Assembly (NCBI GenBank): GCA_965644295.1
Contig: CBFFRP010000397.1
Span: 1 to 64,000, forward strand
DNA from: Paraphysomonas bandaiensis
Taxonomy: Eukaryota; Protista; Chrysophyceae
Direction of reading: 5' to 3'
DNA: 64,000 nt
The stretch's first letter is position 1; each line of letters begins with the position of its first letter. The notes under the pieces are model-generated. The model saw only the letters and a list, made by a program, of their open reading frames with translations. It was not told the DNA's origin and did no database searches. The position numbers were made by a program, and so were the translations under genes. Shown piece after piece: positions 3,606-58,986 of the stretch.

Positions 3606-3791
3606 TAAAGAATTGATCTTTATAATAGTAAAATAATGTTGTGATTATTAGAGTGTAAGTAATGAACACGATAGAGTGAAAATTATGAACAACAATATAG
3701 AACATAACTATCATGCACAACGGAATAGTTAGATCATGTATCTTCGACAGATACTCTCTCTAATTCAGTTCATGATATATTTCATTGAACA

Positions 3792-4427
3792 TTATAACTC
3801 ACAGATACAATCACTGAATCCTAATAAGTCTCTTCTGCCGCTTTTCCGCAGACGGAAAGGCTTTTCGGCGTCCGTGTTCACGTAGATGTTGTTCGGCGAC
3901 AACAACTTCTCAGGGAAAGTAGCCCCACCTTTCGTGACATGCGCCCTTGTCATATTAAAATCCCAGCTGTGCTCATCCTTGTACTGATCGAACACTACTG
4001 TTGGATTCTGTAGTATCGGCATCAAATTCTTGAAGCATGCGGTCATGTTAGTGAGACCTGTGTAAGGAAACCATTACCCAATACAGCATGAATGCGCATT
4101 ACTTATCATACCTTTCACGATCTCTACATCCGTCTCGACATCTCTGTCGCCTTTGTAGCCCATTAATACTTGGGCAAAAGTAGAATTTGTGTTCGGATAC
4201 TGCACGCTTAAACAGTACGCAAGTCTGTAGTGATATAGCACTGTTATGAACACATTATTGAAAGGATTTATTAATTCACCTGAGTATGTTGCACTCAACT
4301 CGGTACTGTCTTTCCAGATTCGACATTAACTGCACTCGCTTACTTCACAGGCCTCGTCTCTCATAGCCTGTGCCGAATCCAGCAGAGTCTCAGTATCTGT
4401 CTTGGATTGCTTTCTCTTGGCTGGCAT
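3792..4427 (-). CDS. Unknown intron-containing protein (MPAKRKQSK...), convergent with the Harbinger transposase; possible accessory gene
   Basis: ATG at 4427, basic N-terminus, ORFs 4074-4298 and 3792-4046 separated by GT-AG intron-like spacers. No recognisable domain. Confidence 0.4.
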
Positions 4428-5451: not shown

Positions 5452-5452
5452 G

Positions 5453-8150
5453 CACTAGTGAAATAAAAGTAGTTCATTCGACAGTGAATTGTCAGTTAAT
5501 CTGAAAAGTGTGGTTCATATGACCGTTCATCCGATGCAAGCTCTTAGTGCTCAACACTCAAATACTCCGGACACTCCTCTACAAAGCCACTAAAGCCTCC
5601 TGGACATACGCCAAGTTCCTTGAAATAGACACACTACTTGCACGCGCCGCAAGGGCAGTCCTGCGCCTACCCCCAGGATACCCCACAGCACTCATCTACC
5701 TTCCAACGAAGTACAAAGGACTTGGGTTACGCAAGTTCTCCACCTGTGCTCAGACCCAAAAGTGGCACGCTCTGCAAAGAGCCATCACCCTTGGAGGCGA
5801 GCCCAAACAAGCTGCGTTATCCATTCTACAACGCCACGACCTAAACCACCCCGACATTGACCTATACATCACTAGCCTGGTCCAATGGGGACAACAGCTC
5901 GGAATCCGTTTGCAGCCTCCATCACCGTCCACGCCCCAATTCCGAGACACCATTGACAGGGTACAATCCCAACTCCAATTGTACGACGATCACCCCCACG
6001 ACTATCAAGCCATCTTCACTGATGGCTCCTTCACTCGCACCAATCTCACCCCCACCCACCTACTCGGAACCTCGCACACCCAGAATGCCACGCACAACGG
6101 GGGAGCAGCAATTGCACAACTAGAGTTACAGACCAACCAAAATCCTCCACCTCACAACCCCAGAGCACACCACACCTGGACTAACATCATACACATACGA
6201 GACCCTTGCGATGTCAGCTGCACTAATGTTCTCCAAAGTCATACCACCCACTGTGCCTATGTGTACTGACTGTCAGGCAGTTCAAACACGAACCACAGAA
6301 GCCCTGTCACGCAGGAGGAGAGCACTAGGCACGAAGCCCCTGGGCGTCTTCTACGAATGCCTTGCCACAGAACATCACAAACAACGTCCAATCAAATGGG
6401 TTCGTTCCCACCCCGAACGCCGAGTGCCAGACCAAAGTAAGTGGACCTACAACGACCATGGCATCTACATAGCTGACGCGGCCGCCAGCGGGGATTGGAC
6501 AACGATCAACAAAATACTCGGCGCCACCAACTACAGAGTGGTCACAACTGAAATCACACACCTCCTAGAGGAATTCCTCACCACTGGCCAATGGCACTGG
6601 AGGAGATATGACAAATATCTTCTCACAGACAGTGGCCCCATGCTAGGGGACGTCACCGAACTCCAACACCACTGGGACCTCCACCAGTACACACTCTCAC
6701 GAGAGATGGCACGTACGCCACACGTACAAGCCGAGACCCACAGTATTGGACACGTAGCGGTACGAGGCTTCCACACAAACTTCACCCTCTCCGCACCAAC
6801 AATAACTCCCCAAAATGCTACGTCTCGTTCCAAGACCGCATACGCGAAACTGCATATGTATGGGACAAATCATACGCAATCGGCAGAAATCGAGCCAAGG
6901 GCAAAACCGGAGACGACCTCACAACCGCCGCCAAATGCACAGACTATGACTACACAACGGACACCATGGCACACATGCTCCTCCAATGCACACAACCGGA
7001 GATTGCCCTCATACGCGAACACGCCTTCCAAACACAGCAATCACAACTTGACAAACTCCACAGAGGCAACGACACCCTCGTCCATGGTTCCACACCGCTC
7101 TGAACAAATTGGCAAAGGCTGCATGGGATCCTACCACACTCAAAGTTGAAAGATACTGGACCGGCCAACTCACCGCATCGCAACTAGCAAACGCCTTCGG
7201 CTGCAACATTTCCACGCCATTACTCAAATATCAGTTCCACAAACTAGAACAATCTGTCACCAAGATTCTACTCCCTCTCTACAACGGAGGGATAAACATG
7301 CTCAAAAACAGAGGCTGCAGACATCACAACATCAAGGCAACACCACTGACGCAACCCTCGACTCCTACAAGCTCACAACCACACCGCACACACACTGCCA
7401 CCAACCCGACAACCCTTCAGCTACTTCAAGCAACATCCACCCCTAGAGCCAAGCCCCCCACGCGACCTCGCTCACAACAACGCAGGCCTGCAAACCCGGT
7501 CCGAATACAAACGACTCTCACCTCCAAACGAAACCCAGACACGACTGGAGCTCCCGGACCCTCTGTCACCGACTCACACTCACGAATCAAAACCCCACCC
7601 TCCACATCCCGGCTCACAAGTGGCTCAGGACCGACAGAGACATTACCCAAAGGAAGACCACCGGACTAAGCCCAACACAAGGGATGGTTGCACTAAGGTG
7701 CTTGCAGCAATGCACAAGCAGTCCCGAGACAACTCAGTATTTAGCAACTTTGCTACCTCTAGTCTAAAGTCGTAGATAGCTAAACAAAGTAGTTCTCTCA
7801 TGTAATAATCAGATCTTTATATTATAATATAATATAATATGACCGTTCATCCGACAGTGCACGAAAAGCGCCAATAATGAATGGTTCACATGACAGTTCA
7901 TCCAACAGTGAATTCGAGAGCTATGAAAATATTTTTTAAGGCGTCTGTTCATGTGGCAGTGCATATGGCAGTTCAGATATTTGCTCAGTGCATATGGCAG
8001 TTCAGATATTTTCTCAGGGCATATGACGGTTCACTGTCGGATGAACGAACAATTAACTGTCATATGAACTGCCATATGGACTGTCTTATGAACGGACAAT
8101 TAACTGCCATGTGGACTTTCATATGAGCTGCCTCCGTTTCACTACTAGTG
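5453..8150. mobile_element. Non-autonomous CACTA/EnSpm-like element (~390 bp once the nested LINE is removed)
   Basis: Left end CACTAGTGAAA...GTAGTTCAT; right end ATGAGCTGC...TTTCACTACTAGTG; many internal CATATGRCAGTTCA-type repeats in both orientations; TG on both flanks. Confidence 0.65.
5535..7838 (+). mobile_element. 5'-truncated non-LTR retrotransposon (LINE) with RT C-terminus, RNase H and zinc-knuckle remnant
   Basis: 16-bp TSD ATGACCGTTCATCCGA (5519-5534, 7839-7854) and a (TATAA)n tail. GLGL thumb motif; RNase H motifs IFTDGS, TDCQAV, WVRSHPER, ADAAA; HMLLQC knuckle; ORF ends PKGRPPD at 7669; frameshifted. Confidence 0.9.
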
Positions 8151-26282: not shown

Positions 26283-27263
26283 GTATATATTGAATGTCTT
26301 ATTATTTAGCAATAGGCGTTGAAAACCTGCACTAATTAGTGACTAGAAGAATACTAGACATACTATTTAGACCTCTACCCGTCACTAATCAATAATTACA
26401 CAACCTCTTTTATCCTACTATTTAACGCTACAGAAGCTGCTTTTGTGCGTCGCCGCGAGCACCAAGGTGCAACCACTTCTGTTCTTTTAGTGTGTGTGTT
26501 ATAAGGCTCGCCATGCTCGTGTGTCCTGTGACTCACCGGCGCGTGTGATCTGGAGGTCTCCCCTTGGGATGAGACTCCACTGGGTTAGGAGGGGGCTCAG
26601 GGTTTTGTATTATTAAGTTCCAGAGTGTAGCGAGTTCTAGGTGGGTGGGCTGTGAGTTGGATAGAGCAGTGGGATGAGGCGTTGAATGTGTGGGCACTGA
26701 TGCTGTGCTCTTTTTGGACCTCTGGAGTAGATGGAGTTTCCGGAGACGGCGTCTTTGGGGGGGTCTGGACGGTGATAAAGTTATTTGGATTAGGTCGGTG
26801 GAATATGTGTGTGAGGCGGAAGGTGGCGCAGTCACGGGTCTTCTGTGGACCCCTATAGTAATTGTAGCACTCTCGGACGTTTACATGGCTGACTCCTCTT
26901 TTCTGACGCGGTCGCGGGGGTAACCTAGGAATTCCTTTGTGCAGAGTGATGTAACGGCGGCCGCGATCCTGTAACATTAGTAGCTTCGCTGCAGCATAAA
27001 GCGGTTAAAGTAGATCAATAACCGCTTTTTCTAGGTGTCGAAGACTTTTCTAGTTGTGTGTACACGTGGTCTCCAAAGACCGTTTCAAGTTGGGCTGTTG
27101 TGATGGTTCTCTCTACCTGCGGGATGGAGAGATTCCAGGCCCTACTGGAGAGTCTCTGTAGCGCATTTGTGACCCAGTGGGGTTGGGTCTGCTCTATTTG
27201 TATTTGTTGGAGAGCATTTTTGTGCCTTTGAAAGGCAGTCTCCCTTATCTGGGTGATGCACAA
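26283..27263 (-). mobile_element. 3' fragment of an RNase H-family LINE with complete 3' UTR
   Basis: Homologous to 15700-16525; PKGRPPD motif; the tail 26283-26480 aligns with 60264-60455. Confidence 0.85.
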
Positions 27264-27578
27264 AATAAGTAACTATGAACATTTAACAATATGTTGTAAA
27301 GATTATTATTTATAATATTTTTTATTACTTTCTTATACGTACTATTTCTCAGTTTTACAGCAATGATGTGATTATTGTTGTGTGTTGATGTGGTTACTAC
27401 TGTATTAACTGTGTATTATAATGGTAGTAGTCAAGAAGAGGTGCAACGGAAAGAAGAATTCGTGACGACTAATCCGGCGACGACCCAGAGAAAGAGGTAC
27501 CACTACGAAAGCGCAAGGGCAGGGTATGTAACACTGTTCATAAAGATGGTGGCGGGGTCGTCGAATTCCAGCAGAAAA

Positions 27579-28001
27579 TCCGGATGCTTGACTTCAGTAG
27601 GTTGCCCAATACCCCGCGGATGCCCTTGAGGTGGGCCCATCCACGGATGTCTGTTTATTCGTCAGGACCCAAAAAGACGTCTACTACTCAAGTTATATTT
27701 TAGTGTTCCTTGTACCATACAAGCATTCGGCTATGTATGGGCAGAACGATATAATTATATTTATGCTCCATAATAATGGGCTGACTATATATATTATGCA
27801 GCTTACATTAGTTTCCCGGAGAAATATCTCGCGGGACAAATTAACATTTTAGAAATACTCGTAGAATATAATATATATAATTTTATAGCTTTCTTTCAAG
27901 AGTCCCAAATTTGAAAATTTTCCCCACGGTTGTCTTATTATATAAGGTTGCTTTTAGAGAGAACAGCACGAAAAGGTGCGAGTTCGACTTTTTGTTGAGG
28001 G
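27579..28001 (-). mobile_element. Short ribozyme-headed element copy, interrupted by ~130 bp of unrelated DNA
   Basis: 27961-28001 is the 5' half of the module and 27579-27830 the remainder; 27831-27960 is unrelated. Confidence 0.75.
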
Positions 28002-28499
28002 TTTGAATCCCCCTTCTTGTAAAATGGAGCTTTGGTATAGATTCTTTCGTATTAATTATAATATTATTATACAAAATGTATAATATAATATATATATTAT
28101 AGTTATATACTTCTTCTACGCTCTTAAAAAAGTAGGGTCTAGCAAAATAAATTTTTGACCAGATTACCCCCATCATATGACCTGCAGGTTTGGTCTTTGC
28201 CATATATATAATATTATTATATATAGTAGACTTTACACTGTATGTCATACAGACAGTCTTTATACACTGTATTGCTGTTGTACGCAATCGAAAGCTGCAG
28301 TTCTAAGGTACTTCGGAGTATGTTGTAGTTAATACCAAAACTCTTCAGGTAATATTTTAAGGCAAAATAATTGATTGTTTTTAATACGGCCTATTTGTAC
28401 TGGGTTGCACCTCTAAACCGCTCAATCAACCATCAACCCAGCAACGATGTCGCTAATATATCTAATAGCTCTTTTTCGGAGATATTACATCGTAAGGAA

Positions 28500-28587
28500 C
28501 CCTCAACAAAGTCGGACTCGCACCTTTTCGTGGTGTTCTGGGGGATAAGTACCGGAGAGATTCTCTCTGGGAAACTAACGTGAGCCG
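28500..28587 (+). ncRNA. Candidate HDV-like (Pr77/ingi-type) self-cleaving ribozyme
   Basis: Hand fold: P1 CCCUCAAC / GUU(CU)GGGGG; P2 CGGACUCGC / GUGAGCCG; P3 ACC/GGU; L3 UUUUCGU; P4 CCGGAGA/UCUCUGG; J4/2 GAAA-C-UAA with putative catalytic C at 28575. Confidence 0.65.
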
Positions 28588-29705
28588 CAAACATAGTCAG
28601 CAGATATTGTTCTGCCCACTCATAGCCAAATGCTTGTGTGATACAAGGGACTCTATAAAGTGTCACTTGTGTAGACGTCTTTGGGCCCTGACGAATAAAC
28701 AGGCATCCGGGAATGGGCCCACCTCAAGGGCATCCGGGACAAGGCCCACCAGAAGGATAACCGGGGTATTGGGCTGCCTGCTGAAGTTAAGCATCCGGGA
28801 TGTTCACCTTAAGAACTCAAAACACCTGAAGTCAGCAGATGTCAGGTATATCAACATTCTGCTTGCTCCCTGCGTTTGCTTTGAGTGATTGATGCTGAGT
28901 ATGAGTTCACATTATTCGGTATCTGTGTGGCCAATGACCGAGGTAATGCGTCAAACTTTCCTCATGGATGCATGGCAATGGCAATGATGTGATTAGACCT
29001 GTCATGTCTTCTCACACGTCTACTGCCTAGTCTTGGTTTCTCCTGACCCAGGTCATTGAGATTATATCAAGGCTCTGGCACTGTTCTCCAAGCAGTGTCA
29101 GGTACATTTGTGGTGCTTTTATGTTATTCTTGCTTAGTAGGTTTTCATCCGAGCGGGGAAGGTGCACGGTTTCCTACTAGTGTAAGTCACTCGGGAGAAG
29201 AGTGCAAGGTGGATGCATGTGCTGGACGAGTGCACACAATGGAGGGAAGACATTGGAGTCAGCTTGAATTTGTAACAGATTTTGGTAGATGTCTGTTTCA
29301 TGCGTCAGTGTGCAAAATTGCACCAGTGAGACCGCTTCGTGACCGTGGGAGGACCCGGCGCTATAGAGCTACTTTATTCTCCCTTCCAGACTACCTGCTG
29401 CTGTGAACACCACCTTGAAGAGGGCCCTAAAGATCTGCCGCATATACAGGAGACATATGCCGAAGACACCGACCGCAAGTTGTTTGTGTTAGGACAAGTA
29501 GATTGGGCAGGAGCGTATGATCCGGCTTAAACACGCAACTCGTCGTATGCCCATGTAGCTAACTAAATCGTGTTGTATAGTTGAACACTTGTCGGTGCAT
29601 GCAATAGTAACTAGATGAGAGTCATGTTATGCCTAGTGTCGCGCGAGTTGTTAGGTTGGTCGCGGCAACGCACAAGCTTGCGCTTCTTAATAATCAGATT
29701 TTCAA
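28500..29705 (+). mobile_element. 1.2-kb ribozyme-headed non-autonomous retroelement with TSD
   Basis: 14-bp TSD TACATCGTAAGGAA at 28486-28499 and 29706-29719; starts CCCTCAAC; ends GCGGCAACGCACAAGC...TAATAATCAGATTTTCAA. Confidence 0.88.
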
Positions 29706-30912
29706 TACATCGTAAGGAAGAAGCATGTCCTTCTCTCGAAAGCTTCTTGGTGCATTTGATTACTTCGAACCGATAAAATTTTGGATGCAGTTTCCAGTCC
29801 GAACTATCATGCATGTTATTATCCAAAATAAACAATTTTGTAGGATCATGGCTTATAAACAAAGAACTGATCAGAGTGTATACTCAACAGTCAAACATTT
29901 ACTATTGTGTTGTCTCTCTACTTGCAATCTATTTTATCAGATTTTAGATATAGTCATGATCGTATTTCAGTTTTACTATAATAGAATTCATAATATCATA
30001 TATATATTATTAGTTCATGAAATAAATGTAATACTGTTACCCACTACTGTGTATATTCTTTAAGCAACAGCCAGAACTCAAACCTTAGATATATTAGCGA
30101 TATCGTTGCTAGGTTGATGGTTGATTGAGCGGTATTCTCTGGTCTTAAAATATTACCAGAAGAGTTGGTATTAACTACAACATACTTCGAAGTGCGTACT
30201 TGCTTGTAAGCTTTTTGCTAGTAGTTATCCTGGATTCTGTGTAGCAATGAAATGTAGAATCTACAAAAATACAACAGCAGGAATAGGCATTAAATATTAT
30301 GCACATATAACGCTGTTAAAGCTAAATAATATAACTTGTAAGAAAAATATTTTAGTTTGTGATCGATGTGTTGCTACAAATAACCTACAACACAACCTTC
30401 TTACTATCTCTCCGAATATGTATAATTCAGCAATACATAGTGCCTTCAAAAGCCCAAATTAATAATAGTTGGTATGTGGAGCGATACACCGTCTCAGCTG
30501 TACAACCCCAAAAATGGCGGAGTTGGAGGATCCCCACGGATGTGTGTAAACAAATGACAGCACAACACCACAAAATGATAAAGTTGGCCCTTTAACTTTT
30601 TCTTACTCAAACTGCAAATGTATCTAACCACCATACTATTAATAGCTTTTGCTGGACTTGTCTTTTCAAAGTCTATAACATTTGGCGGTGTTGGCCACCT
30701 ATCTATAACATGGTATTCCAATACCTGTTGTGATACCTATCAGGTAAGTATAGACTAAACGTACCACTACAAAACTCCTTTAGCTGCAACGCATTCCATA
30801 CTACTTCACTAAGTATATACACATGTATGTTCATTACAAGAATATTCAGTGAATTCTAAAACCGGGGCAAATCCAACACTAATACGCGGAAAAGTCAAAA
30901 ACTTACATACGA

Positions 30913-33032
30913 TTAGTCCCACATCAGAATATGAGAAATTCCAGGCTTCGCTCTCAATTCGTTTAACTTTGCCCTTAATCCCAGAACATGATGGCCTTCA
31001 GGAATATTTTTTAATTGTATACATCCCGAAACAACATGCAAATCAGTCCATAAATGCCTGTCCTCGGACGGTATGTAATTAGAGAGTCTGTCATCAGGTA
31101 CGTTTAAGTCCACCGTGAACTCAGTAGCCAGCATAAGATTCTTGAAATGATATCCACATACCATTATGCTCTTGTAGTTGTTTATTTGAAACTTGATAAA
31201 CAATTCTCCTGCGCTACGAAGCTGTGCAGTGTATCCCGGTCTGAGCTCAAGGTGCGTTTCGTCAGGAAACACTTTATACTTGTACTTTTCAAAAAAATCG
31301 GCATGATCATATGTCCATTTATGGGTTCCAACTATTAATTCCGACAATGACATATTGGCAGCATAGTGAGGGTGGTAGTCCGTGAAGCACTTGGGTTTAT
31401 TTTCACAAAAGTAAGGGGTGTCTTTATCAATGCCGCAATGCAGGGGAGGTGGTACCTAGGACACTTCTGTAAGTTAGTTCATATGTGGTATCGCAAACTC
31501 ACTTTGGTACTCGTGAAAAGTTTGCTGTGTTCCAATGTGTACTCTGCACATTGTCACAATAGATTACACAACTACGTGTACTATTATATATTTCCTACTT
31601 TTAAGTAATGCGTTTCGATTGGTCTCCCCTTCTATTAGGTCGTCCTGCACAGTATACAAGGCATCCAGGAACACAAGAGTATATAGCCACGAAATCAGTT
31701 CGCCCCTAAAGAGATGTCCTGCTCTGGTAGGGTGCCAACTCGCACCTTTTCCATGTGGATTTCCATATCTGCGTAAGTATTATACGAATTGATACATCCG
31801 GATTTCTTACTCATTGTTCTCCTTTGATGAAAACCGCAGCATACTGCAGTTTCTAAAGAAGAATTGCAGATTACATTTTTGGGGAGTAGATCCAAACTCA
31901 TCACAAGCTTTGTCATGTTCGACATCCCATCCAGAGATGCCGCTCACAGCAAGGGGAGCCCCACTCTTCTGATAGGAGTATGCGGATTCTGCAAACCTCC
32001 TGGCAGTGGGTCCAATTTTCTCAAAGGACCGGAAAAACTGTGCTCTCTGTTCCCGCACATCATCCCGAGAAGGTTTCCACGGGTTCATTCCAGCCGATTT
32101 CTCTGTCCATTCCTGAAAGTATGGTTTACGTCAACCAAGAGAAATACATTGGGCTGTAACACTCCACCTCGGAAGAGTAAGGTGGCGTGTATTTTGACGG
32201 TGGACACCCACCACCTATGGAGCCAGTTCCTGATGGAGAGTAATACACTGATCCGGGATTACGGGACCATAATGCAAATCGTGCCGCCATTTCAAAGTAC
32301 CCTTCGTTGTGACCACAGTTGAAAGACTGTTCCCTGTAGAAGCTACGTCACCGCAGAGAGGTACCAAAACCTATCACAACCTACCATCCAACAAAATCTG
32401 GATCATATCCACCCATAGCCTCATAGCAATAGTCAGAGGGAAAACATTGGTTATTCCCTTGGGCGATGTTCCGGACCTTCAACTCGATGCCAGCCGCCTG
32501 CAAAGCGGGGGCCATACGGCGCCGCAGGACCTCCGGGTAGCTCTGTTGGTACAGGTTGTCGTGGCCAGCAGTTACTGAAGAGCCACCAAATACCATAACG
32601 TACTGGGAATTATCAGTCACAATCTTTTTCGCGAATTGCCACTTGATAATATCATAACTCTTCCTGTAAAACTTGAAAATTAGAACACTGAAATAAATAC
32701 TTTATCACATACTCATCAATATTTTGGGCAAGATAAAAAAGCTGCCGCCCCCACTTCGAGAACAACTGCAGACATGACTTCAGAGCACTATCACATAATA
32801 TACACGTGGTTAACCTCATATCTATTGTATATCAAGCTCAATGACTCCTGGGAGAGCCTTACAGCGTTGTTCAGGTCAGCTTCAAACTAAGAACAGTTCA
32901 GTGGAAGATATCATGCGGACTTGACTTCAAGTTTACCTCAGATAGGGAGCGGTGGGAATTGCTGCGTCTACCTGACACGCTTGGGAATATTGCAACTAGA
33001 ACCATGACTATCAATCGGAGTAGCTGTGTCAT
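30913..33032 (-). CDS. Secreted multi-exon protein with an SGNH/GDSL hydrolase-like domain
   Basis: Signal peptide MTQLLRLIVMVLVAIFPSVSG; block I-like VFGGSSVTAGH; RNIAQG; later WHP motif; several short introns. Confidence 0.6.
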
Positions 33033-43238: not shown

Positions 43239-44814
43239 GTACTAGGCATAAATAGGGCTAGGTAACAATATATTGCAGTTCCCTATATTGTTCCCTAGCC
43301 CTGGTAAATAAATCGATTCTAGATGAAAGTGTTTGAATGAAATTAAGACTTCATTCTCAACTACACACAGTTTTAAGTTCTAATGTGTACTACTGCACCG
43401 TGCACAAACATGTGGTTTCATTGTTGTTAATAATAGTATAATAGTGAGTAATATTATGCAACCAGTTTATAAACTACACGATAACACAATATATCTCTGC
43501 CTAGCTGACAGGAACAAGATTATTTCAGACAAAGGAAGCCTACAGAATGTGCCAACTATTCCAGTAGAGTTGCGTAACTTGTGTAAGACCGTAAGGGGTA
43601 TAATTGTCAACTTGAGCGTATCCTATCAAGGCTGGTACATACTATCTACGCTCTTGGGCGAGAGATGATGCCATTGTATTCACTGTTGACCAAGAAGCGC
43701 TCGCAGATTTTATACACAGACATTACTCAGAGCTGCGGTTTAGTACTACTGAGTCTAGTGAAGGACTATAGACATGTGTAGTGCACTCCCTGTGTCTAAT
43801 AATCTCGCACAGTAATCGTTCAATCAGTGAAATCAGTCAACGATGCAACATTCATAATGATTTTATGTGTAAAGCCAAACCACATGACAACTTCTGCAGT
43901 ATTCAGTGTTGTACTCCTAGCTAAGCAACCCTTTCGCATTATAGTATTGGGATAAACGGGGTTCCAGTTTGATAGTAATGGGAAAGGGGAAAATGTGAAA
44001 AAGGGGATTTCCCATTCTTTTTGCAAGAAACCACCTACGAACGTTAGATTTTTTCATATCTTGAAGAGTCCTCCACCAAATTTGTGTTGAACTTTCGACA
44101 GAGAATTTGTTTATTTTGACTGGTGATTCCTGCCCCATATAAATATTTCGATAGTGGGGTTGTGGATGAGGTACAACAACAGTCACTGATGTTGTTATAT
44201 ATATCAACATACATATCAATATCCAGTTTGGTATCTATATATTAAATATAATATATCAGAATGATATCGTGAGATCCATTCTATTACTTTTACTAGAATC
44301 GCGCTTCATAGCTGTTAGAGTATTATATCATTTTAGAGAATCGATTTTGTTAAACTATGTCAAGATCCCCGCAATTAGAGGTTTATATTAATAGTACTTA
44401 ATAGTAGACTCATGTAACAAATATTTTAATAGAGAACTGTAGGACTGTTTTGGGAGAAAAGTGGGATTGATGGAAACAATCCCATTGCACTGAGCCATGT
44501 TTTGTACGACATTGCGAAGTCATTTAGTTCCGCTGGAAATGTCGATATTGCTGAAATATTCATGCCATCTGTGACTGAGGAAGAAGAGAGAATGTTTAAT
44601 GAGATTGGTTTTGAGGTATTTGATATATTATGAAGTATATGAATTACTCTCATATTATAATAATTAGGTTATTGAAGAGACGCAAGAGAATGTTATCAAT
44701 GGACGATCTTTATTTTGTCGAATTCTATTGTGGTTATGGGATACGGAGCGCACGCAGAAGAACACACAACTTCCCTGTGTTGTTCTTGTAACAAGAAATA
44801 ATGACTACGCCTCA

Positions 44815-47390
44815 ATGCTGAATAAGTTTCGTAATCGAAGGTTTGTACAAGTTATGCGTATATATACTCGCATTTCACTGTACTATCTGTAGTGTGTACG
44901 TGGTATGTATCTCAAACTTCATAGAAGACAATCAACCTATTAATCATGAGTTGCGTCGGGCGTGTACTACGTCAATTGAATTTAATGACGTTATTGAGCG
45001 GTCACAAGAAGTGTCTATTTCTGAAATCAAACACTGTAGTGATTCTGATTCACCGTCACCCCTGAACCCTCCAGAATCCAGCACAGGAGAACCTCCACAT
45101 GAAAATTCATCATCTTTACGTAACGACGAGGAAAACGCGACTAACGGAAAGTCTCCAGAAGAATCGCCTCAGTCGGTGATTCACACCCGATCTGGTGAGG
45201 ATTTATTTCCGGATCACACACGTGGATTACCACTGTCTTACCAACGATCTCTCTGGCACGTAGATAACTCAGCTGGTTACGTACCTTCTGCTGCTGTTGA
45301 AGATATGCAAGACATGCGGTTAGGCGGAGACCCAAGATTGGATGCGATCCACCGCAGTTCCAGCAGCGAAGGGTCCACGAGTCGTTATAGCAGTTCTGGA
45401 CTACCCACTGCCCACGTGTCCCCGTCACATTTTAATAGTTCTTCGTTCAATTCTTCACCGTTTGTTCCACCAAAAGTGAATGAAGTATCCCCTCTTGCTG
45501 ACCAAGGGGGTTTCTGGAACTCTACTCCTCCACCCTCTAATCAACAGTCATCTGGTAGCGAGGTTATTTCTCGGGAGCAACGCGCATTGCATGGTGAACT
45601 TGTGAATGCAGTGTATGCTTACAATGTCAAGACTGCTGTCTCCACTTTGCGAAAAATATACACCAAACAAACGAGGCATTACCGCATCCCCACTATTCTT
45701 GCCGTAGTGTTTCCAGACACAGGTGCTATGGTTGCTGATGGACGAACGGATCTGTTAAATGTTGCCGTGGGGTTTTCATTAGACTGCATACAGTGGTGTT
45801 TCGGTATGCAGAAAGGGGAAAATATTGAGTCTTTCAAATACAAAATGAATGCTAATATTGCTCGCTGGATACTTCGGGAAACAGTACGTAAGGGTGTACC
45901 GTCACCGCCTACACAGGTCATTATGAACACAACAGTCTCTGTCGTCAACCATATACTGGACACAGTTGTGGAATTAGACTTCGCCTGGGAGCTCTTGACC
46001 GCAATGAAAGTGCCGAATGCGGTGCAGCGCCTGGTTCCATATATTCTTACTTGGCGGGCTTCGTCTGACTCATCGGTGGAGGCTCGTGTTAACGAATTCC
46101 TCTACGATCATCAGGAATTTTCTATCATGATACCGCCATCGCAATCTCGACTCGATCGCAATATGTTCACCCCTCAGGGAGGATATAGGTGGGATGACTC
46201 GGCCGATAGGAAGTTGGTTCTTGGTGGGGGAACCCATATAATGCAGGTGAGTCATATTCGTGCTGCGTCCGTTGTATCATGAGTACAGATGCATTGCAAG
46301 TGATATAACCTCATTCACAGGCTCATCCAGGGCAAACCAAGAAACATGTGGACACTGAGGACCAATCTTTGGAGAACAGGTTACTAAAGTTATTGGCTCG
46401 ATCCCAAAAAGGCGAGCTAGGTGCACGTATTCCAGCACTCTACCGCGATGAATATGGCGAGTCTTTGCGTCTGCGTGGTCGCAAATTGAAGGATATTCTT
46501 CTGGGTAATTGTCACTATATTTAAACCTGTTATAAAGCTAACTGAAATCAATATATTAGATACTGGGAAGGTTGAAATGATTGGGGCTGAGGGTCCTGGA
46601 GACAAAGTGTTCAGAATTGTGTCTAAGCACGGTAGCAACCGTCCGCCCATGCATCGACCGTCCCACACCGGAGAAACTGGTATGAGTTCGGCTACAGGGT
46701 CGTATGGAGGACATCACCGCTCCCAGAGTGAAGATGTATGTCATGTTGCATTTTGCATTCAATATATTGTTTTATGAATGTATTGTATTCTCAGTTCTTG
46801 CAGCTATCTATCGGGAATCAACAGCAGCAATTTCCAGCAGCGGATCTGCGCAGTAGAAGCGAAGAGGTAAGAAGACCGTGCTCAGTAATCGCGTTGTTGC
46901 ATTTGTATATTACTGTGCCTTACTTGCACTGTTATTATTCTATAACTCACGTGTTTTGTCAGTATTACAACCACCAGTACCACCAGAATGTATTTCCTCA
47001 ACATTGTAGTGGTACCCGAAAGGTTCGGCCTTCAGGCCCACCTTTAACGTCAATTCTCTCCTACACATCAGCTGATTCATTGCACCCTCCACAGCAGCAT
47101 CAGACATCACATCAGTTGCAGCATAGTGCCGCGTCGTCTTACGGCTACACGGACCGATCATCGTCAGTGGAGAGTACGAGCGTACCACCTTATCTACATC
47201 ACCAGGATGACGACGACAATTCCTTTCTCTTCTCTCTGCACGATTCGGTAAGTACAATGTGTCTATGTTGGCGCCGCCTTGTGTATATTCGAAAATAACG
47301 TTTTATCAGCAGCAAAATTACGACTATACGGCTCCAATGATCTCTGAGCTCAACAGAGATTCGACTGTCCTTCATTCTGAGGAGTCGTAA
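44815..47390 (+). CDS. Hypothetical multi-exon protein with Ser/Pro/Gln-rich disordered regions
   Basis: 479-aa ORF plus downstream spliceable exons; central helical region not recognised; ends approximate. Confidence 0.6.
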
Positions 47391-49823
47391 GCTAAATCTA
47401 CAAATTTCTACCGATGAAGCTTAATTGGAAGATTACATTTCATTAAGTTGCCTGGAATTTCATACACCTGACACTGCTAATTATTTTGTCATTGTCTTTA
47501 TAGATATTTGTTTGGGCTTCTTCATCAAAGCTCGTGATAAACTATGTTTCATCACGCATCCTCAAGAATACGTTATGTTATAGGAATTATTACGTTAATT
47601 CTACCTACAAGATTATTTCAGACAGTGCTGTTGTGTCACTTATGACTGGCTTTTGTGGCCGGTGTTACTTTCAATGATCATGGATATGGGTATTATTAAA
47701 GACGAGTACAATTGTCATAGTGTACTTTTCGTATTTAAGATGGTAACAAGTCATTGCAGCTTGTATGATCAATTCAAGTTTGATGAATAAGCTCTGTCAT
47801 GGCGAAATATGGTTTAAGATATATAATGTGAAGTAATCACTAGATCAGAGCAATATCGTGTTGCTTTTTACACCTGCTACAGGAAAATAAAGTCGAAACA
47901 CTATTAGATAAGTGTTTTTATATCCATATTACATGAAACTTGTGAAGAACCTACTTTTATTTTCATTACTACTCTCGCAACGTCAAATTCATAGAATTTT
48001 ACTACTGGAATGCAGCATTGTTTTTGTGTTAATCAGGGAGCACCTATTTCCTCTAACAACAAGCAAACTAGAAATAGCTACACATTCTAGATACACTAGG
48101 TTTTCAATAAAACAAGGATAAGCTTCAATTTAGATCGCGGAACGATATAGCCTTATCCCCATTTTGTCTCAAAAAAAGCTTTTTTTGACCTGATTTTGTC
48201 TCAACAGGGCGCTCATATCAGCACCGGGAAAATATAGATATTCAACTTCAATATTCGATTCAACAGAAGCTCACTTCTACCCTAAGTCATATGTACGTGA
48301 TTTCATTATATTACACAATTATAGAGAAACCACAGTCATGAGTTAAATCATTAGACACTTCAAGTTATATTCCATCCTTCGACTTCTGTATAAGATCATA
48401 ACGGTGTCAGTGCAAGCGATCTATCTTCATAGCCAGGACTTCGAAACAACTTCAAGAATATTACAGGAGAGTTTAAGTACCATATCTGATGCTATATAGG
48501 TGGTTTGGAGCAATGACACCCAGTTCTTTCAGGGTTTGGGCCATATCGAGCTTCTCAGGAAATAGTGTGCCTCATATCATACTTACATCATTCGATCAGG
48601 CGCACTTGCAGAGGTAAAGCCTGCTGTATATAAATGTGATGATGATGCTAATGAAGGGGATAAGAAGCCTCTCTTTCACCTACAACTGTTCACATTCATC
48701 ATCACACTTACAGTATACATATCATTGATTTGAAACTATATGAGTTTTCATTTGTGTTCTTAATGTTTATCAGGGAACATCTATTTCTTAATACAGCAAG
48801 CATGCTACAAATAGCTATACAATCTAAAATTACAATTTAACCTCGGGATAATTGATCATTGAGTAAGTGTAGTGCTCAGTTTCGGATATAAAAACGGCTG
48901 GTAGTTCAGATTGGAAGCAACTTCCGAAGATCGATCAGATAGGAGTGATGAACTGGACAGAGAAAATTTAAGGTATCGTTCATGCGTAAAAGTAAGCATC
49001 ACACTACATGTGATATGATTTTGTCTTGTGAAAACTAATTCACACTTGTAACTGGATGCTTTAATAATTATCAATGCGATGATGCCGTTATGTAGAATAC
49101 TTTATCCTACGCCAACAATACAAAGAATGCCTATAATCGAATACTTTACTTTTCATGACTGAAGGTGATTCTCTTTCAGCATATATTCGACTAGCTATAT
49201 ATTAGAAATCTGTTTCGTAGTTAGGGAAGGTCTTAATGAGATAGCCGCAAAGAGAAGCTTTGCCACAGTTGCATCAACAGGAAGCTCTATTACGTTAATG
49301 TGTTTTTCTTCTCCAGTGTGCTTGATAGTTTCGTCATCGTCATTAGTCACCAGTGCTTCTTCTCTTATATCCTCGTCTCTGTTCAGTATACTCGTGAGTA
49401 CCTTACGCTTCTAAAGCTACTGCTTTTCCTCTTTGTGACGAAATTTCTTTCAGCATGCCTTGAACCACAAGACTCAGTCTAGCTCGTTCCATTATGTAGC
49501 ACTGTTACTGTTAGTTGGTGTACACTGTATGTCCAGAGTCCAGATGCTCGAGTGTTTGTTCTTGTTATGATGATCGTACGTCAACAGTTCTTGTAATATG
49601 ATGGATTTTTATTGTTAAAAAGTGCATTTTTATACTTAAAATAAGGGTTTTTAGAGTTAAAGTCTGTGTAAGTTATTATTATTTTTCATACTTGCTTTTG
49701 CAGTAAGTCTCCATTTTGTGTATGGTTAAAGTCAGTCAGTCAGTCAACAGTCAGGCTATGTCGGGTGTAATATCGAGATAGTTATCGGCACTTTTGCGAT
49801 TACTAAAGCTGCTGTATAGTGTC

Positions 49824-52222: not shown

Positions 52223-53695
52223 CTACTCTGTTTGAATATTATTTCCATTATCAGGTGAAACATTTCCAGTTTCTAGGTCTGCTCGACATATCGGACAAGT
52301 GGAATGTGATCGCATCCACTCACAGATGCATACCTCATGAAACCGGTGACCACATGGTAGCTTCACCGGCAGGTAAATTATTGACCTTCCTAACGACCCA
52401 TTGGAAAGACTATGAACATGACGAATCTGGGGTTCAGATAAGGCTTCAGTATCAGTAAAAGGAACGACGGCGCTACGAGACCGGAAAAATCCCCGGGGGG
52501 CAGAACTCTCTGATCTCCCCGCAGGTGGATTTACTGGTGATACGTCTGGGTCATCGCTTATTGAAGAGTCGGAGTGTTGTAAGTGTTGGTGCTTTTTAAG
52601 CGACTCCAAGCATATTGCACACTCTTCTTGGTCCCCAGCGTGTACTGCGTGGCCGAATTTCCACCGTCTCATTACCCCTTCGTTAGCCCTCTTGAAAGCA
52701 GTATGTTGTCGTAGTAGGTCTACGCTAGCTATCGGGGGTCGGGAGGTGCGTCGAGAATCCGAAGGTGCCGTATATCTACGACGGACAATGCTTCCCGTCA
52801 ATGTGCGGGTTATATAAACAAAAGAATCCGAGTCATCATCATGGAGATCATTAGTTGCATGAGATTGCTCCATTTCATCCTCATCTAAATTTTCTGCAAA
52901 GCAGAGTGTATATATCACAATAACTAATAGCATCATTGCAAGCGTGAGAGATAAGCTCATGTAGTGCTCCACGAATATGTCTTTTGGAAAGATAATACTT
53001 CTAACCTCTGATCCACAATACTCTATGCTCAAACACATTCTCGTTCTATCATCATCAACATCCTGGTTTTGTTGGGAGCAAGACACTGATTTCATGAGCG
53101 TAAAGTTTTGGCTGGAAGTGATCATAATTGCAAAAGTGGCAACACCAAACCCGGCACTAATTTTAAGCATATTAGCGCGCTCCCTATTAGAAGTAAAAGC
53201 CTCATCCGAGACAAACGAGGACGCCGGAGTCGCCTCGAAAAGAACAGTGAGGCACAGTATAATAATAGAGAACGATAGTATCCACATATCATACAGAAAA
53301 TAATTATGATGATTAGAGCTATAAAAGTCGCCCAAGTACACAATTCCGGAATTCTGCCAAATATCTGAAATACAGTCGACTTTTCGCTTGTCAGAATAGC
53401 AGATATTGCTATCACTGCCGGTGTACGAATCTCGACGATAACACAACGGCGGGCTGGCTTCATATGCCTCGTTGCTTCCAACTACACCATAGATGGCATT
53501 CCGTGCTTTACACTGCTCACTCTCTGAAAAGCAATATTCCCGTACCGATTCCCAGTTATTCGTCTGATCACTCCTCACCTTCAAGTAAATATAGAGCACA
53601 CATATTATAGTCAAGATTCCACATTTGATGCCAATACGCTTTCTATGAATAGAAAACGCCGCGCTAGACAGAGCTTCCACACACGTGGTGGCCAT
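52223..53695 (-). CDS. Multi-pass membrane protein with a C-terminal RING-H2 finger (putative E3 ligase)
   Basis: About four hydrophobic segments; CAIC...LPCGHRFHEVCICEWMRSHSTCPICR; intronless ORF. Confidence 0.85.
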   Translation of the reverse strand: MATTCVEALSSAAFSIHRKRIGIKCGILTIICVLYIYLKVRSDQTNNWESVREYCFSESEQCKARNAIYGVVGSNEAYEASPPLCYRRDSYTGSDSNICYSDKRKVDCISDIWQNSGIVYLGDFYSSNHHNYFLYDMWILSFSIIILCLTVLFEATPASSFVSDEAFTSNRERANMLKISAGFGVATFAIMITSSQNFTLMKSVSCSQQNQDVDDDRTRMCLSIEYCGSEVRSIIFPKDIFVEHYMSLSLTLAMMLLVIVIYTLCFAENLDEDEMEQSHATNDLHDDDSDSFVYITRTLTGSIVRRRYTAPSDSRRTSRPPIASVDLLRQHTAFKRANEGVMRRWKFGHAVHAGDQEECAICLESLKKHQHLQHSDSSISDDPDVSPVNPPAGRSESSAPRGFFRSRSAVVPFTDTEALSEPQIRHVHSLSNGSLGRSIIYLPVKLPCGHRFHEVCICEWMRSHSTCPICRADLETGNVSPDNGNNIQTE

Positions 53696-54351
53696 TGTCG
53701 TTAGATAATGTGCATATCGTGAACCCGTACGTCTTATCCAATAATTAACAACTATAAATATGAATATAAGAACCAATCAATAAATAAAACTATAGAACAG
53801 ATGTGAATGGCTCAGCTGAATGTGTCTTAGCGTGGATGATTACATCTGATACTTAAATAATAAGAATGGTTCGGTGATTCTTCTACCTTCCACTCTATAG
53901 AGACGAGAATATGTATATGTATACATTCTGTTACGTATATACCTGTACAACCAGTGTATAGGTATACGGCGGTATATTATGGTATATACTGAGTAGCAGT
54001 ATACTCCACACCACATATACTGCTCTGTATAGGTATATATACCAGGTATATGCAGATTAAGATATCATAACCACAGTGGATCAACTCGGAGCATGATCAA
54101 CACATATACATATGGATATCCACGTTATATATACCAGTTATAGTAACCATCTTTTGACTTCACTCTAAGTTGAAGTTACTTTCACTTCGTTTAGTCTTCT
54201 TTTTAACTGCAATAAAATGCGTATAAACAAAAAAATAATATTCCAATAAGCGAATCAATTGAGAAGAATCACACCATATGAATCTCATCACTTATATCTC
54301 CTTTATAATCTTATAGGGCACTACAGTACATCACATCGTCTTAATTGAGGG

Positions 54352-57300
54352 ATGTCATTACCATTATTTTTGTCTTCAGAAATAGCCGCATGTGTAGTGG
54401 CAATAGCCTGTCGCAACACGAAACATACTGAACGTAACTGTGCGTTTGCAAGACGTCCCCCAGACTATCGTGAGGATCATATATTACGACCGGAGATTGC
54501 CATATGTGGTATTAAAGAAGATGAAGTCAGTAATGTGACTGCACGTTTAATTGAACGAGGGTTTTTGATTGGGTCGTGTGTAGCTGACAGTGATACCCAT
54601 CTGTGCTATCTGAGTATTGGACTATCAGCGACATTAATCACAAAACTTGCAGTTCAATATGCACTGCCAATTGTTCCACATGACCTTTACACCACATCAC
54701 AGCGGACCTTTCTTGCTTGTCAGTCTATGGATTTGATCAAGCGGGCTAGTTTCGAGTATACAGAATGCTTTTTGTTGCACAGACGGTGTGATCTTGCGGA
54801 TGTATCTGCCAGTAACTCGGAAACCAAGATTAGCTCTTACTTTGGCCCCTCCATTGCTGCGTACTTTGCCTGGCTAAATTTCATTTCCATAGCATTGCAG
54901 GCTCCGTGCTGCGTGGGTTTCATTCTATTTGTTTACCAACTAGTAAACATCTCCGCGGACTCCTACTTCGTACCCGCTGCATGTATTCTCATGAGCGTGT
55001 GGAGTATAGTATTTATCAAGTACTGGCGACAGCATATGGTCACATCTGTGTTCGCATGGGGTTCCGTCAGCTCATACGTTGCAGCAACGATAAAGTGGGA
55101 AAAGCCAACCTCGGAGTTCAAAGTCGTGAAGCATGCATTGACTGGATGGCTATTGGTGGCAGTTACGTGTACGATCTTGATTGCACTTGGAGTTTATACT
55201 GTGACGCTATGTATTTTTCTCCAGGTGGGGTGCCATTGACTCATTATTGTAAATCTGCTACTAATATATGTTTCACATACAGGAGTTTGTCATGCAAGAG
55301 ATTGGGCCCATTCTATATATTAGCAGGGTTCCGCTGTTGCTCTACAGGTGTGTAGCCGCGGATTGTCATATGTAGCTTTCTTGCATAACTCTCTCGCAGC
55401 TTCTTGGTTCCTGCATTGGAGTCGCGACTATCACAGCTATGTGAATATATAACTGATACGGCGCCCATCCACACTTCAAGTCAGCGCTACAACCGACTGG
55501 TTTGGATTAGCTGCACTATTCAGCTGGCCAACCGATTCGCTGGACTTGTATATTTAATTCTATGGGCAAAGGACTTTGAGAGCGCAGGTGTGGTACTATC
55601 ATGCATGTTCGTTGCTGACGAGGTAAGGCGGTCACGAGTTTTCGTGTTTATTATCTGACGATGCGTTGTACTTCCAGCTACGAGTCCACTTGGCTACTGG
55701 AGATGATTCGCTATTTTTTGCTTCAGAAGATGTTCAGAGTGCATTCACCGATGTATATCATGCCTCTGTATCGTGCGTTGCGACCCCTGCTACATCTCGC
55801 CGTCCAACCAGCCGGAGACATAGTATGCCGGTCAGAATTCAGAGGTCTGGATCTCATAGCCCTCTGAACAATGCTATTGGGGGAGTGAAAAGTTTTTTTA
55901 AGTCTTTAGTCAAGAGAAAGAAACCTACTGATAAAAAAATACGACGAATGGGAGGGACACCTAAAAGGGAATCTTTTAAGCGCAGTGTGTCCAGTCGAGG
56001 TCAGCGTGCTGCTTTGCGAAGAAAGTCTGGTTGGAAGAGGCGAATAGGAGACGATGGAGACGACAGTGATGACGATGACTCAGTGTTCTGGAACACGGAA
56101 AGGGTAAATAGCAATGATAGTGAGAGTGTATCATCCGTATCCACTTCATCAATTGTGCATACGACCTCCCGTAGATTGTCTGTTACTAGCCGCCACGCTG
56201 AGGATATCTGCACCCACGAAACATCATGTGCTGGTGCATACAGTTATGAAGCTTTCCTTTACCAAGAAGGGAAGGCGCCGGTGAGTGTAGTAGTTTTTAG
56301 CATTTTTTCGTTAATAGTTATATTACAGGTGCATAATGTTTGTGGTAGTCACATATCGAAGATTTTAGTTTACACAACAGTAGTGTGCTTCTCTGGTATA
56401 TACCCACTTGCCCCACTACTAGCGATGTATCAATGCAACAAGTTTATAGAAGGAGATCTATACCGATTGGCGAGGTGTCGCCGCCCTGTACCGGATGAGA
56501 GCAGATGGGTTGGTGATTTGATGGAACCTTGGATAAGTGTAATGGAGGTTAGTGTAGTTCCTAGCAATGATACGTCCAATATTTACGTGCAACGCAATGT
56601 TTATTTAGGTTATCAACGTTATTGGCATATTTCTGAATTGTTTTATTGCTTTTCTGGCGTCGAAACATGGTAGTTTGTATGTTCCACTGAGTATGTCGTC
56701 AACGTGTGGTGACGTCATGGCTTTGGTTTTGTGTGCGATTTTCATGGAGCATTTACTTTTGGGAGCGCGAGCTGTTATCTGCGCGTTCCTACCTGACATG
56801 CCCTTATGGATTAAACTCAAGCTTGATCAGAGGAAACACGGCATGGTACATATTAATTTGTATTGTACAATTGTGATAACTTAGCATCGGTAGTGTATTG
56901 AACAGGGAAGAAATCGTCTAAGGCTGTACGCGGATCATGTAACCACACCGGCGGATGAAGCTTCGACTGCAGAGTTGTCGAATGTAGCAAGTGATGGATG
57001 CGAGGAGGTGGTCAAGTCAAAGATATCTGCACTCTATTGCACTTGCGGCTGGGCAATGCCGCCTCTTTTTTTCTTTGGAATGTCACTGATGCCATGTGTA
57101 TTCGTGCAATTTTCAATGCCTCTTTTCTTCTCCACATTTCCTATCTCTATGGTCCTATGTGCGTATGCGTACCACATGAAGCGTCGGTGGGAATGGGACG
57201 CCGCTATGGGTATTATAACCGACCCTATCCTTGTTAACCGTGTGGTGGACCACCTCCCCGGTTGGGCCCATGACTCTGGAAAAAACCAGTGCCAGTGGAT

Positions 57301-58986
57301 CAACAAGCTTATGCGACAGGCATGGAAGAAAATTGGAGATATTGTGGAACCGCAGCTCATGACCAAAGCGAATGATTTTTTCAGCCGAAAGAAACCAAAT
57401 TTTCTTTCCAGCATGACGATGAAGAATGCCTCTATTGGCTCACTTCCCCCAAATATCGTTTCTATGGAAGTTTTAGACCCAATACCTGGGAGTACCAATG
57501 TACGCCGTGTTGTTTAATTTATACGTACGTTTATACTTGTAATGTAGGTGCAGATCAGCATGGAACTCAACTGGGTATCTGACGGTGTCATCACTTTCGA
57601 CATCGGTCTTCTAGGCCAAACATTTAGTATCGATGTTTTCAACCTCCGCCTATCGGGAACAGTAAGGGTCGAAGTCATTTCATCAGATGACCTTGACAAC
57701 CCAATGCCATACAAAATAGCGAAGGCTTGTTTCATGAAGAGTCCTCAGGTTGATATTTCTGTTAATTTCGGAGACAGTAATGCAACAAGAGAATATTCGA
57801 AAGAATTGGGCTTTGGTCCGGCAATTGCCCAGGTACGTTATGAGTATAGCCGCCTACGAAATTGATTGCTGTGCAGTTCATCAAACAAACTCTTGCTACT
57901 CGGATGCTCTTCCCAAGATGGGTGCAGGTTCCGCTCATAAAAGGAGTGTCTGAAGAGGATATGCCAACGGAAACTCCGCACGGTGTGCTGACAATACAGA
58001 TCCTCAGCTGTAGTAGTTTGGAAATAGGTGATATTACTTCCTCCGACCCATTTGTGGAGATCAAATATCTGGATGAAGTGGTTCGAACTGAAGTCGTGTA
58101 TAAGGACCTGAACCCAGTCTGGCACAATGAATACTTTGATTTTACTGTATACGACCCAGGTTTCCACCACATTGAGCTAACTGTATTTGACTATGATAAA
58201 GGGTCTACCCCGGACTTTTTGGGGCAGGCGAATCTGGATCTGGGCTACATGAAACACGGAGTGACGAAGGAGTTTGACATTAGGTTAACTGGGGTGAAAT
58301 CTGGAGCTATTCAAGTAGCGGTTACATACTTTCGACTTCAACGTCTACATATTGACTATCGCGTAGTGGAAGATATCCTCGTTAATCTCCCCCATAGCTA
58401 TCTTAATGACGACATAATTGCGAATGATTTTTCCATTCCAGTGATAGCTAGCAAAACAAATTCTACCATATTGAAACAATCATACGAAGTCAACAATCTC
58501 CAGATTCATTCTGAAGAAAACAATAGTTCGGATGTAACATGTAGTGTGCGGGGGCTCAGCAATCGCAAGGTGTACGGCATTATTATTATATCGCATATAT
58601 CTTGTCAAGATTTGAAATCACCTGGCGGGACAAGTTCGGTACGCCCTTTTGTATCGTTTTGTATTGGTCGAATGAAGAGAGTGACAAACGTAGCACGAGG
58701 AACGCTGAACCCTGTGTATGAAGAAAGTTTGACTTTTGTGCTAATTGAAAATATGGATGAGCCTCGTGATGATAAGCTTGTTGTCAGAGTGAAGTCAAGA
58801 AACTCTTTCGGGCGCAACTACAAGCTTGGTTCTGTTGTCATTCCGCTATCTGATATTACCGAGTATAAAAAGCAAGAGCAGATGGTCACTAGAGCACTGG
58901 AGGTGGACAGGATTGCCGAAGGGTATATAAACTTGTATATTAAGTATGTTGCGGCTTCAAGTTACGTTGATAAGAACCAAGTTTAA
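54352..58986 (+). CDS. Divergent anoctamin/TMEM16 domain fused to an SMP domain and two C2 domains
   Basis: ISSYFGPSIAAYFAWLNF, FSGIYPLAPLLA...RRPVP, EHLLL...LPDMPLW (anoctamin); LPGWAHD...QWINKLMRQAW (SMP start); SDPFVEI...LNPVWHNE...VFDYD...DFLG (C2A); RPFV...LNPVYEE (C2B). Phase-0 introns 56846-56905 and 57500-57547. Confidence 0.78.

Follow-up and report, generated by a model that had tools for sequence, protein, structure and literature searches.

A nine-exon gene of Paraphysomonas bandaiensis that joins a TMEM16 domain to an SMP-C2-C2 module

TMEM16 (anoctamin) proteins have both termini in the cytosol, and their canonical Ca2+ site, which holds two ions, is formed by an Asn and a Glu on transmembrane helix (TM) 6, two acidic residues on TM7, and an Asn, a Glu and an Asp on TM8. 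The hairpins of extended synaptotagmins (E-Syts) do not cross the membrane; the SMP domain of E-Syt2 dimerizes, as do TMEM16 proteins. Scramblases are partners of bridge-like lipid-transfer proteins, namely ATG9, TMEM41B and VMP1 for ATG2, and XK/XKR for VPS13A. Here we describe a gene that encodes a TMEM16 domain and an E-Syt-like SMP-C2-C2 module in one chain. It occupies positions 54352–58986 of the forward strand in a 64,000-nucleotide stretch of the Paraphysomonas bandaiensis genome (contig CBFFRP010000397.1, positions 1 to 64,000), which we call the window.

Among the closest described systems is yeast Ist2, in which three of the five Ca2+ ligands are substituted and which is reported to be a constitutive scramblase (PMC13286939). 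Ist2 recruits Osh6/7 and can sustain Osh6-mediated phosphatidylserine transfer in vitro (PMC13286939), and the coupling of scrambling to transfer in cells is stated to be an open question for Ist2-Osh6/7 (PMC13286939, 2026 review).

The fusion described here is real, old and expressed. A reading of the window made from sequence alone had proposed one polypeptide, and this is borne out by a spliced transcript, by a linker that is under purifying selection, by a paralog that matches exon for exon, and by distant homologs, two of which are uninterrupted open reading frames (ORFs). TMEM16-SMP-C2 fusions form a widespread and old family, in which the window gene is a divergent copy. Both modules belong to textbook families; their joint architecture is undescribed yet widespread. 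We consider it probable that the product of this fused gene is a contact-site protein anchored in the endoplasmic reticulum (ER), combining SMP-mediated transfer with Ca2+-independent scrambling.

Gene structure and the junction between the two halves

The gene has nine exons and a product of about 1,406 amino acids (aa). A single open frame runs from the ATG at 54352 to the TAA at 58984–58986, every exon border is GT..AG and in frame, and the introns are short, at 44–61 nucleotides (nt). The model rests on these borders, on the match to the MMETSP transcriptome peptide P0083, and on the exon-by-exon match to a paralog on contig C354 of the same genome. From its N-terminus, the protein comprises a cytosolic N-domain, then the TMEM16/anoctamin domain with its ten helices, some 50 aa of linker, the membrane hairpin, the SMP domain, a C2A domain of the Ca2+-binding type, and a basic C2B domain of the Ca2+-less type. 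The features are as follows.

54352–58986 (+): whole gene
54352–55224 (+): exon 1
55283–55347 (+): exon 2
55400–55622 (+): exon 3
55678–56280 (+): exon 4
56329–56547 (+): exon 5
56609–56845 (+): exon 6
56894–57499 (+): exon 7
57548–57832 (+): exon 8
57877–58986 (+): exon 9
54829–56845 (+): TMEM16/anoctamin transmembrane domain, TM1–TM10, broken up by introns and by the exon 4 insert; Pfam PF04547 matches in exons 1, 5 and 6
55605–55622, into the first codons of exon 4 (+): TM6 Ca2+-site position, with RVHLA for the canonical xN..E (N to V and E to A)
55678–56280 (+): insert encoded by exon 4, some 200 aa within the cytosolic TM6–TM7 loop, basic and Ser-rich with an acidic patch, predicted to be disordered
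56344–56457 (+): TM7 and TM8 Ca2+-site positions, with GSHISK for (D/E)(D/E)YLE and YQCNKFIEGD for LNNxxExxxD
56846–56893 (+): junction intron, 48 nt, GTACAT..GGTAG, phase 0; P0083 and P0001 read HGM/CIEQGRNRL across it
56894–57046 (+): linker from TM10 to the hairpin, coding, with no in-frame ATG
57047–57178 (+): hydrophobic hairpin of two short hydrophobic helices, recognized from sequence, predicted as helices in the AlphaFold2 model of the paralog, and conserved in that paralog and other fused homologs
57284–57948 (+): SMP (TULIP) lipid-binding domain, exons 7–9, assigned by alignment to E-Syt2 (4p42), by the family profile and by the paralog model
57979–58338 (+): C2A, Pfam C2; loop 1 GDITSSDPF at 58027–58053, loop 3 FDYDKGSTPDF at 58186–58218
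58570–58950 (+): C2B, second Pfam C2 stretch, with SVRPF and VKSRNSFGRNYK; aligns to E-Syt2 C2B

The two halves meet at the intron between exons 6 and 7. The sequence-only reading had given this as a phase-0 intron of 60 nt at 56846–56905. Its GT-AG ends, its phase and the in-frame join stand; its acceptor does not, being placed 12 nt too far downstream. Because the transcript-derived peptide reads ...DQRKHGM/CIEQ/GRNRL, the acceptor in use is the AG at 56892–56893, and exon 7 begins at 56894. If the intron were retained, it would contribute in-frame TAG codons at 56882 and 56891.

The transcript evidence was obtained by searching with exon 7 against 1.84 billion cluster representatives, which returned P0001 at 99% identity. 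The cluster of P0001 contains P0083, a 1,403-aa peptide from the Paraphysomonas transcriptome MMETSP1103 (taxid 36769). The exons were compared with P0083 one by one, carrying over only the two bases of the codon split between exons 2 and 3; given the exon 7 start at 56894, exons 1–7 differ from P0083 by 5 substitutions in 926 aa. P0001, also from MMETSP1103, consists of one ordinary ORF, 950 aa in length, on a contig of 4,727 nt, and it too crosses the junction. A transcript peptide that reads across the junction implies an RNA from which exactly 56846–56893 is missing, and therefore both stop codons with it. Both public transcript peptides, P0083 and P0001, join the exons with the 48-nt intron gone.

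After the TAG at 56882, the next in-frame ATG comes at 57056, where the hydrophobic hairpin opens. When the linker is aligned with that of the C354 paralog, its 50 codons contain neither gap nor stop, the ratio of nonsynonymous to synonymous substitution rates (dN/dS) is 0.14, and identities at the three codon positions are 0.76, 0.68 and 0.38. In this it resembles the other exons, for which dN/dS is 0.08–0.16 where synonymous sites are unsaturated; intron sequences are unalignable. These comparisons show the linker to be coding and under purifying selection.

Two side observations concern the surroundings of this model. The 48-nt intron at 56281–56328 is in frame and free of stops, and a mechanical ORF (55666–56673) runs straight through it; the transcript shows it spliced, and its retention would add 16 residues immediately before TM7. 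Upstream, on the opposite strand, a neighboring gene (52223–53776 of the window, -) is predicted from its ORF translation to encode a protein that passes the membrane several times and carries, at its C-terminus, a zinc finger motif of the RING type (CAICLE...CGHRFH..C...W....CPICR).

Domains of the encoded protein and their calcium sites

Pfam searches were run on each exon singly, and the transcript peptides P0083 (window gene) and P0084 (paralog) served as full-length stand-ins. Exon 1 matches Pfam Anoctamin (PF04547) over profile positions 1–137 with an E-value of 5.8e-18 and 65.4 bits, against a curated cut-off of 28. Exon 5 covers profile positions 333–384 and exon 6 covers 392–459, ending at LPDMPLWIKLKLDQRKHGM; the matches reach position 459, and the anoctamin domain is therefore complete to its end. 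P0001 scores 139 bits against the same profile. In phmmer searches with the N-terminal half, the nearest relatives of solved structure were TMEM16K (1.6e-10) and nhTMEM16 (2.3e-9), together with afTMEM16. An AlphaFold2 model of residues 1–745 of P0083, made with a family alignment of 13 sequences, had a predicted TM-score (pTM) of 0.67. All of the top 50 Foldseek hits to this model were TMEM16 structures, the best being TMEM16K (6r65; E 1.3e-14, TM-score 0.66–0.68). A look-up in the ESM Atlas gave generic anoctamin clusters only, all below 0.9.

The 201 aa of exon 4 include 34 Lys and Arg, 47 Ser and Thr, and 23 Asp and Glu, and residues 397–574 have a predicted local distance difference test score (pLDDT) below 50 in the AlphaFold2 model and are thus predicted to be disordered. 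The whole TM6–TM7 loop is 204 aa long here, compared with 53–128 aa in eleven other fused homologs; it is longer only in P0065 (232 aa). Identity between the exon 4 inserts of the window gene and the C354 paralog is just 35%.

In the window gene, six of the seven positions that make up the canonical TMEM16 Ca2+ site carry a different residue. On TM6, the positions read GNVQE, NNLME or similar in canonical fused homologs. On TM7, in the HMMER alignment to TMEM16K (5oc9), D497 is replaced by Ser and E500 by Ser. On TM8, the same alignment gives Gln for N525 and Phe for E529, with a Glu two residues further on, and D533 is kept in register. The full set of Ca2+-site motifs is intact in most fused homologs.

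Beyond the junction, exon 9 contains two stretches of Pfam C2 (5.3e-38). With phmmer, residues 745–1403 of P0083 align to E-Syt2 (4p42) from the start of the SMP domain through C2A (9e-17), and the family profile aligns to the same structure from the first SMP residues through C2A (2.4e-75). The transcript peptide of the window gene is disturbed inside the SMP domain, and the paralog P0084, which is 64% identical, was therefore folded in its place. The best Foldseek match of the resulting AlphaFold2 model was 4p42 (E 8.9e-30, TM-score 0.70), and its pLDDT was 72–88 for SMP, about 85 for C2A and about 80 for C2B. The window gene is assigned to the SMP family by its alignment to E-Syt2, by the family profile and by the predicted structure of the paralog. 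All five Asp residues of C2A that align with the Ca2+ ligands of E-Syt2 C2A are kept. C2B has none of the Ca2+-binding Asp residues and has basic loops, as in the Ca2+-free C2B of E-Syt2; these loops hint at a possible binding of PI(4,5)P2 or the plasma membrane.

These results agree with what had been read from the letters of the window. The anoctamin domain is supported both by a PF04547 match above the cut-off and by a predicted structure that matches the TMEM16 fold, comprising a ferredoxin-like N-domain and ten helices, and the composition of exon 4 is that of the large basic and Ser-rich insert which had been described. The divergence first noted in the NNxxE segment, which reads YQCNKFIE, extends to six of seven Ca2+-site positions across TM6–TM8. 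E-Syt2 is the best match in sequence, profile and fold to the region after the junction, which had been described as a hydrophobic hairpin, an SMP-like domain and two C2 domains, and alignment to its C2A and C2B confirms the contrast between an Asp-rich C2A and an Asp-less C2B.

Paralogs and fused homologs

The paralog on C354 (G000:C354, approximately 43270–47865, -; 2636–7230 in the reverse complement of the 10000-base locus L004) matches all nine exons in order, at 60–73% aa identity. It has the same Ser-Ser on TM7 as the window gene, and its TM8 Glu is still in register. Comparison of the TMEM16 exons of the two genes gives dN/dS values of 0.10–0.16. Its junction intron is 49 nt long and leads to a stop if unspliced; this length puts the flanking exons in different frames, and they can therefore be joined only by splicing. 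A transcript of the paralog retains this intron and was called as a separate SMP-C2-C2 protein of 613–682 aa (P0085 and P0002). The automated annotation, which splits the C354 paralog into two proteins, is corrected by the fusion result.

There is a third fused TMEM16-SMP-C2 gene in this genome, on C442 (G000:C442, approximately 26800–31700, -; L006). It is of the canonical type and closest to P0038, and its Ca2+-site motifs are intact: IVDNILE on TM6, ADYLELILQ-FGY on TM7 and LLNNMMEAKVD on TM8. About nine more anoctamin loci were seen, on C451 (two), C17, C297, C425, C429, C363, C71, C34 and C577, and a scan with SMP_LBD found no SMP domain adjoining them. The TMEM16 repertoire is large for a protist genome of 62.6 Mb.

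Outside this genome, Pfam Anoctamin and SMP occur together in a single chain in thirteen distant cluster representatives, most of which also contain C2: P0020, P0023, P0034, P0037, P0038, P0056, P0075, P0065, P0019, P0008, P0062, P0079 and P0024. Hidden Markov models built from the family found an anoctamin segment ahead of the SMP domain in about 30 of 81 matches, many of which are fragments truncated at the 5' end; truncated contigs and split gene calls make an apparently unfused status unreliable in these collections. Searching with exon 7 directly retrieves TMEM16-SMP-C2 fusion proteins. Two homologs are intronless, each encoded by one uninterrupted ORF: P0056, of 1,352 aa and 4,059 nt (NCBI assembly GCA_024449895.1), and P0034, of 1,462 aa and 4,389 nt (JGI metagenome contig L005, gene 960–5348). 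Proteins of the P0034 type are present on metagenome contigs as long as 210 kb, sometimes under the wrong name 'YagU'. In the family alignment, collinearity extends from TM10 across linker and hairpin and through a conserved GIxSD motif, which points to one old fusion. Homologs with an established source come from the chrysophyte genera Paraphysomonas and Epipyxis and from Tribonema, a xanthophyte; the others are environmental eukaryotic proteins from metagenomes or Logan.

A word-index protein search with P0083 returned only its own cluster and one unrelated C2 protein, because its relatives are too distant to share words with it. Our literature search found no paper describing an anoctamin-SMP-C2 fusion, and recent reviews of SMP proteins and of Ist2 make no mention of one. 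Public protein collections hold the architecture as uncharacterized or 'hypothetical protein' entries, with one JGI name that lists both domains.

Proposed function and comparison with known systems

The product of the window gene is most likely an ER-anchored contact-site protein that joins SMP lipid transfer to a scrambling activity which is either independent of Ca2+, as in Ist2, or lost. The C-terminus of a TMEM16 domain is cytosolic and the hairpin does not cross the membrane, and the SMP and C2 domains would therefore face the cytosol. The ER is the most likely host membrane because of the kinship with the ER scramblase TMEM16K, with the fungal scramblases and with E-Syts. We propose that the protein is held in the ER by its TMEM16 domain and hairpin, and that C2B, joined by C2A upon a rise in Ca2+, would bind an opposing membrane and so create a contact site. 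The SMP domain would ferry glycerolipids into or out of the ER leaflet that faces the cytosol, and the TMEM16 domain would re-equilibrate the two ER leaflets, or loosen lipid packing beside the SMP entrance. With its ligands replaced, the window copy would scramble without Ca2+, and Ca2+ control would move to C2A. Since TMEM16 proteins and the SMP domain of E-Syt2 dimerize, a twofold assembly would fit. We infer that lipid transfer and scrambling may in this way be coupled within one chain.

For the family as a whole, we tentatively suggest that scramblase and SMP carrier form one natural machine within a single chain, the former feeding or relieving the latter at a contact site; in both divergent copies from Paraphysomonas, the TMEM16 domain may have become a Ca2+-independent, always-open scramblase of the Ist2 kind, with Ca2+ control left to C2A. 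If this is true, the architecture is a 'Rosetta stone' fusion, implying that transfer proteins of the shuttle or tube type, beyond the bridge-like ones, are functionally coupled to scramblases. Whether a mechanistic link exists between scrambling and the non-vesicular transfer of lipids at contact sites is an open question (PMC13286939), and a conserved fusion is genomic evidence that the two activities cooperate. It would also offer experiments a one-polypeptide system, in a genome that holds both an intact-site copy and degenerate-site copies, allowing scrambling, transfer and Ca2+ control to be compared.

Several observations weigh against our reading of one expressed fused gene that transfers and scrambles lipids. 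The transcript comes from a very close relative strain or culture and not demonstrably from the assembly itself. In both assemblies of the MMETSP transcripts, about 56 nt without GT..AG ends, covering the last part of exon 7 and the first part of the intron, are absent at the exon 7/8 border (window 57446–57552), and the rest of the intron at 57500–57547 is retained, which shifts the frame in the SMP region. TransDecoder therefore cuts the contig into ORFs of 950 and 460 aa; the 1,403-aa peptide P0083 reads on in frame past this border, as though one base were missing. Possible causes of this disturbance are a polymorphism between strains, an aberrant isoform and an artefact of assembly, and the paralog transcript supports the canonical exon 7/8 junction. 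The Pfam SMP match of exon 7 (1.5e-4, 21.8 bits) is under the curated cut-off of 35. Finally, the Ca2+ site is more degraded (six of seven positions) than in Ist2, and scrambling may therefore have been lost altogether.

Arguing by analogy with Ist2, we favor Ca2+-independent scrambling with Ca2+ control in C2A, and regard the loss of scrambling, leaving an anchor only, as the main rival. In its fullest form this rival accepts the fusion and takes the TMEM16 domain of the window copy as an inactive scaffold, a dimeric ER anchor for an E-Syt-like tether and carrier, with scrambling left to the C442 copy or to other anoctamins. The substituted Ca2+ positions speak for it, as do the disordered insert of about 200 aa, which adjoins the gating helix TM6, and the presence in the genome of an intact-site fused gene and some nine other anoctamin loci. 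Against this, the TMEM16 exons of two divergent paralogs are constrained (dN/dS 0.10–0.16) beyond the need of a mere anchor, and Ist2 scrambles constitutively despite its substituted site (PMC13286939). We therefore consider an inactive scaffold unlikely, though well ahead of the remaining alternatives.

Decay of a duplicate into a pseudogene is very improbable: the TMEM16 core is divergent and the transcript of the related strain carries a frame-disturbing lesion in the SMP region, but in this genome an unbroken frame of 4.2 kb runs through nine exons joined at canonical splice sites, all compared exons show low dN/dS with synonymous sites saturated, and the gene is expressed. The weakest alternative, two neighboring genes (an anoctamin ending at the TAG at 56882 and an SMP-C2-C2 gene starting at the ATG at 57056) with the fused transcript an assembly or read-through artefact, draws on the separate proteins P0085 and P0002 (613–682 aa) that ORF callers give on the intron-retaining transcript of the paralog, and on a first Met that opens the hairpin as in ordinary E-Syts, but it is scarcely credible and we reject it as largely refuted, since the window transcript is spliced, with exactly 48 nt removed at GT..AG and the frame kept, substitutions in the 150 nt upstream of that ATG follow the pattern of coding sequence, the frames of both paralogs remain compatible with splicing despite different intron lengths, and the fused distant homologs include single uninterrupted ORFs.

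Our reading of the window gene as a fused, ER-anchored protein of transfer and scrambling can be set beside four kinds of described system. In Ist2 with Osh6/Osh7, too, a TMEM16 domain in the ER has substitutions in its Ca2+ site, the cytosolic part extends to a second membrane, and a lipid-transfer module is physically associated. In Ist2, however, transfer is the task of a second chain, an ORP protein bound to a long disordered tail, and contact with the plasma membrane is made by a polybasic peptide, whereas in the fusion protein a single chain includes the transfer module, an SMP domain, and membrane binding would fall to the C2 domains.

E-Syts and tricalbins (E-Syt2, 4p42; the two-C2 E-Syt of Trypanosoma brucei, PMC8093936) share the order hairpin-SMP-C2A-C2B, with Asp residues in C2A and none in C2B. 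Their hairpin is N-terminal, whereas in the fusion protein it lies within the chain, after all ten helices of a complete TMEM16 domain; animal and yeast E-Syts and tricalbins have three to five C2 domains, compared with two here.

TMEM16K/anoctamin-10, an ER scramblase of ER-endosome contacts, and the fungal nhTMEM16 and afTMEM16 are the best matches of the N-terminal half in sequence and fold. They bind two Ca2+ ions through acidic residues of TM6–TM8 and have no lipid-transfer domain, whereas the window gene retains one Ca2+-site position in register. Finally, ATG9/TMEM41B/VMP1 with ATG2, and XK/XKR with VPS13A, likewise place a scramblase at the end of a lipid-transfer protein. In those systems the partners are distinct chains that belong to unrelated families, and bridges carry the lipid in bulk, whereas here the two are covalently fused and the transfer module is an SMP domain of the shuttle or tube type.

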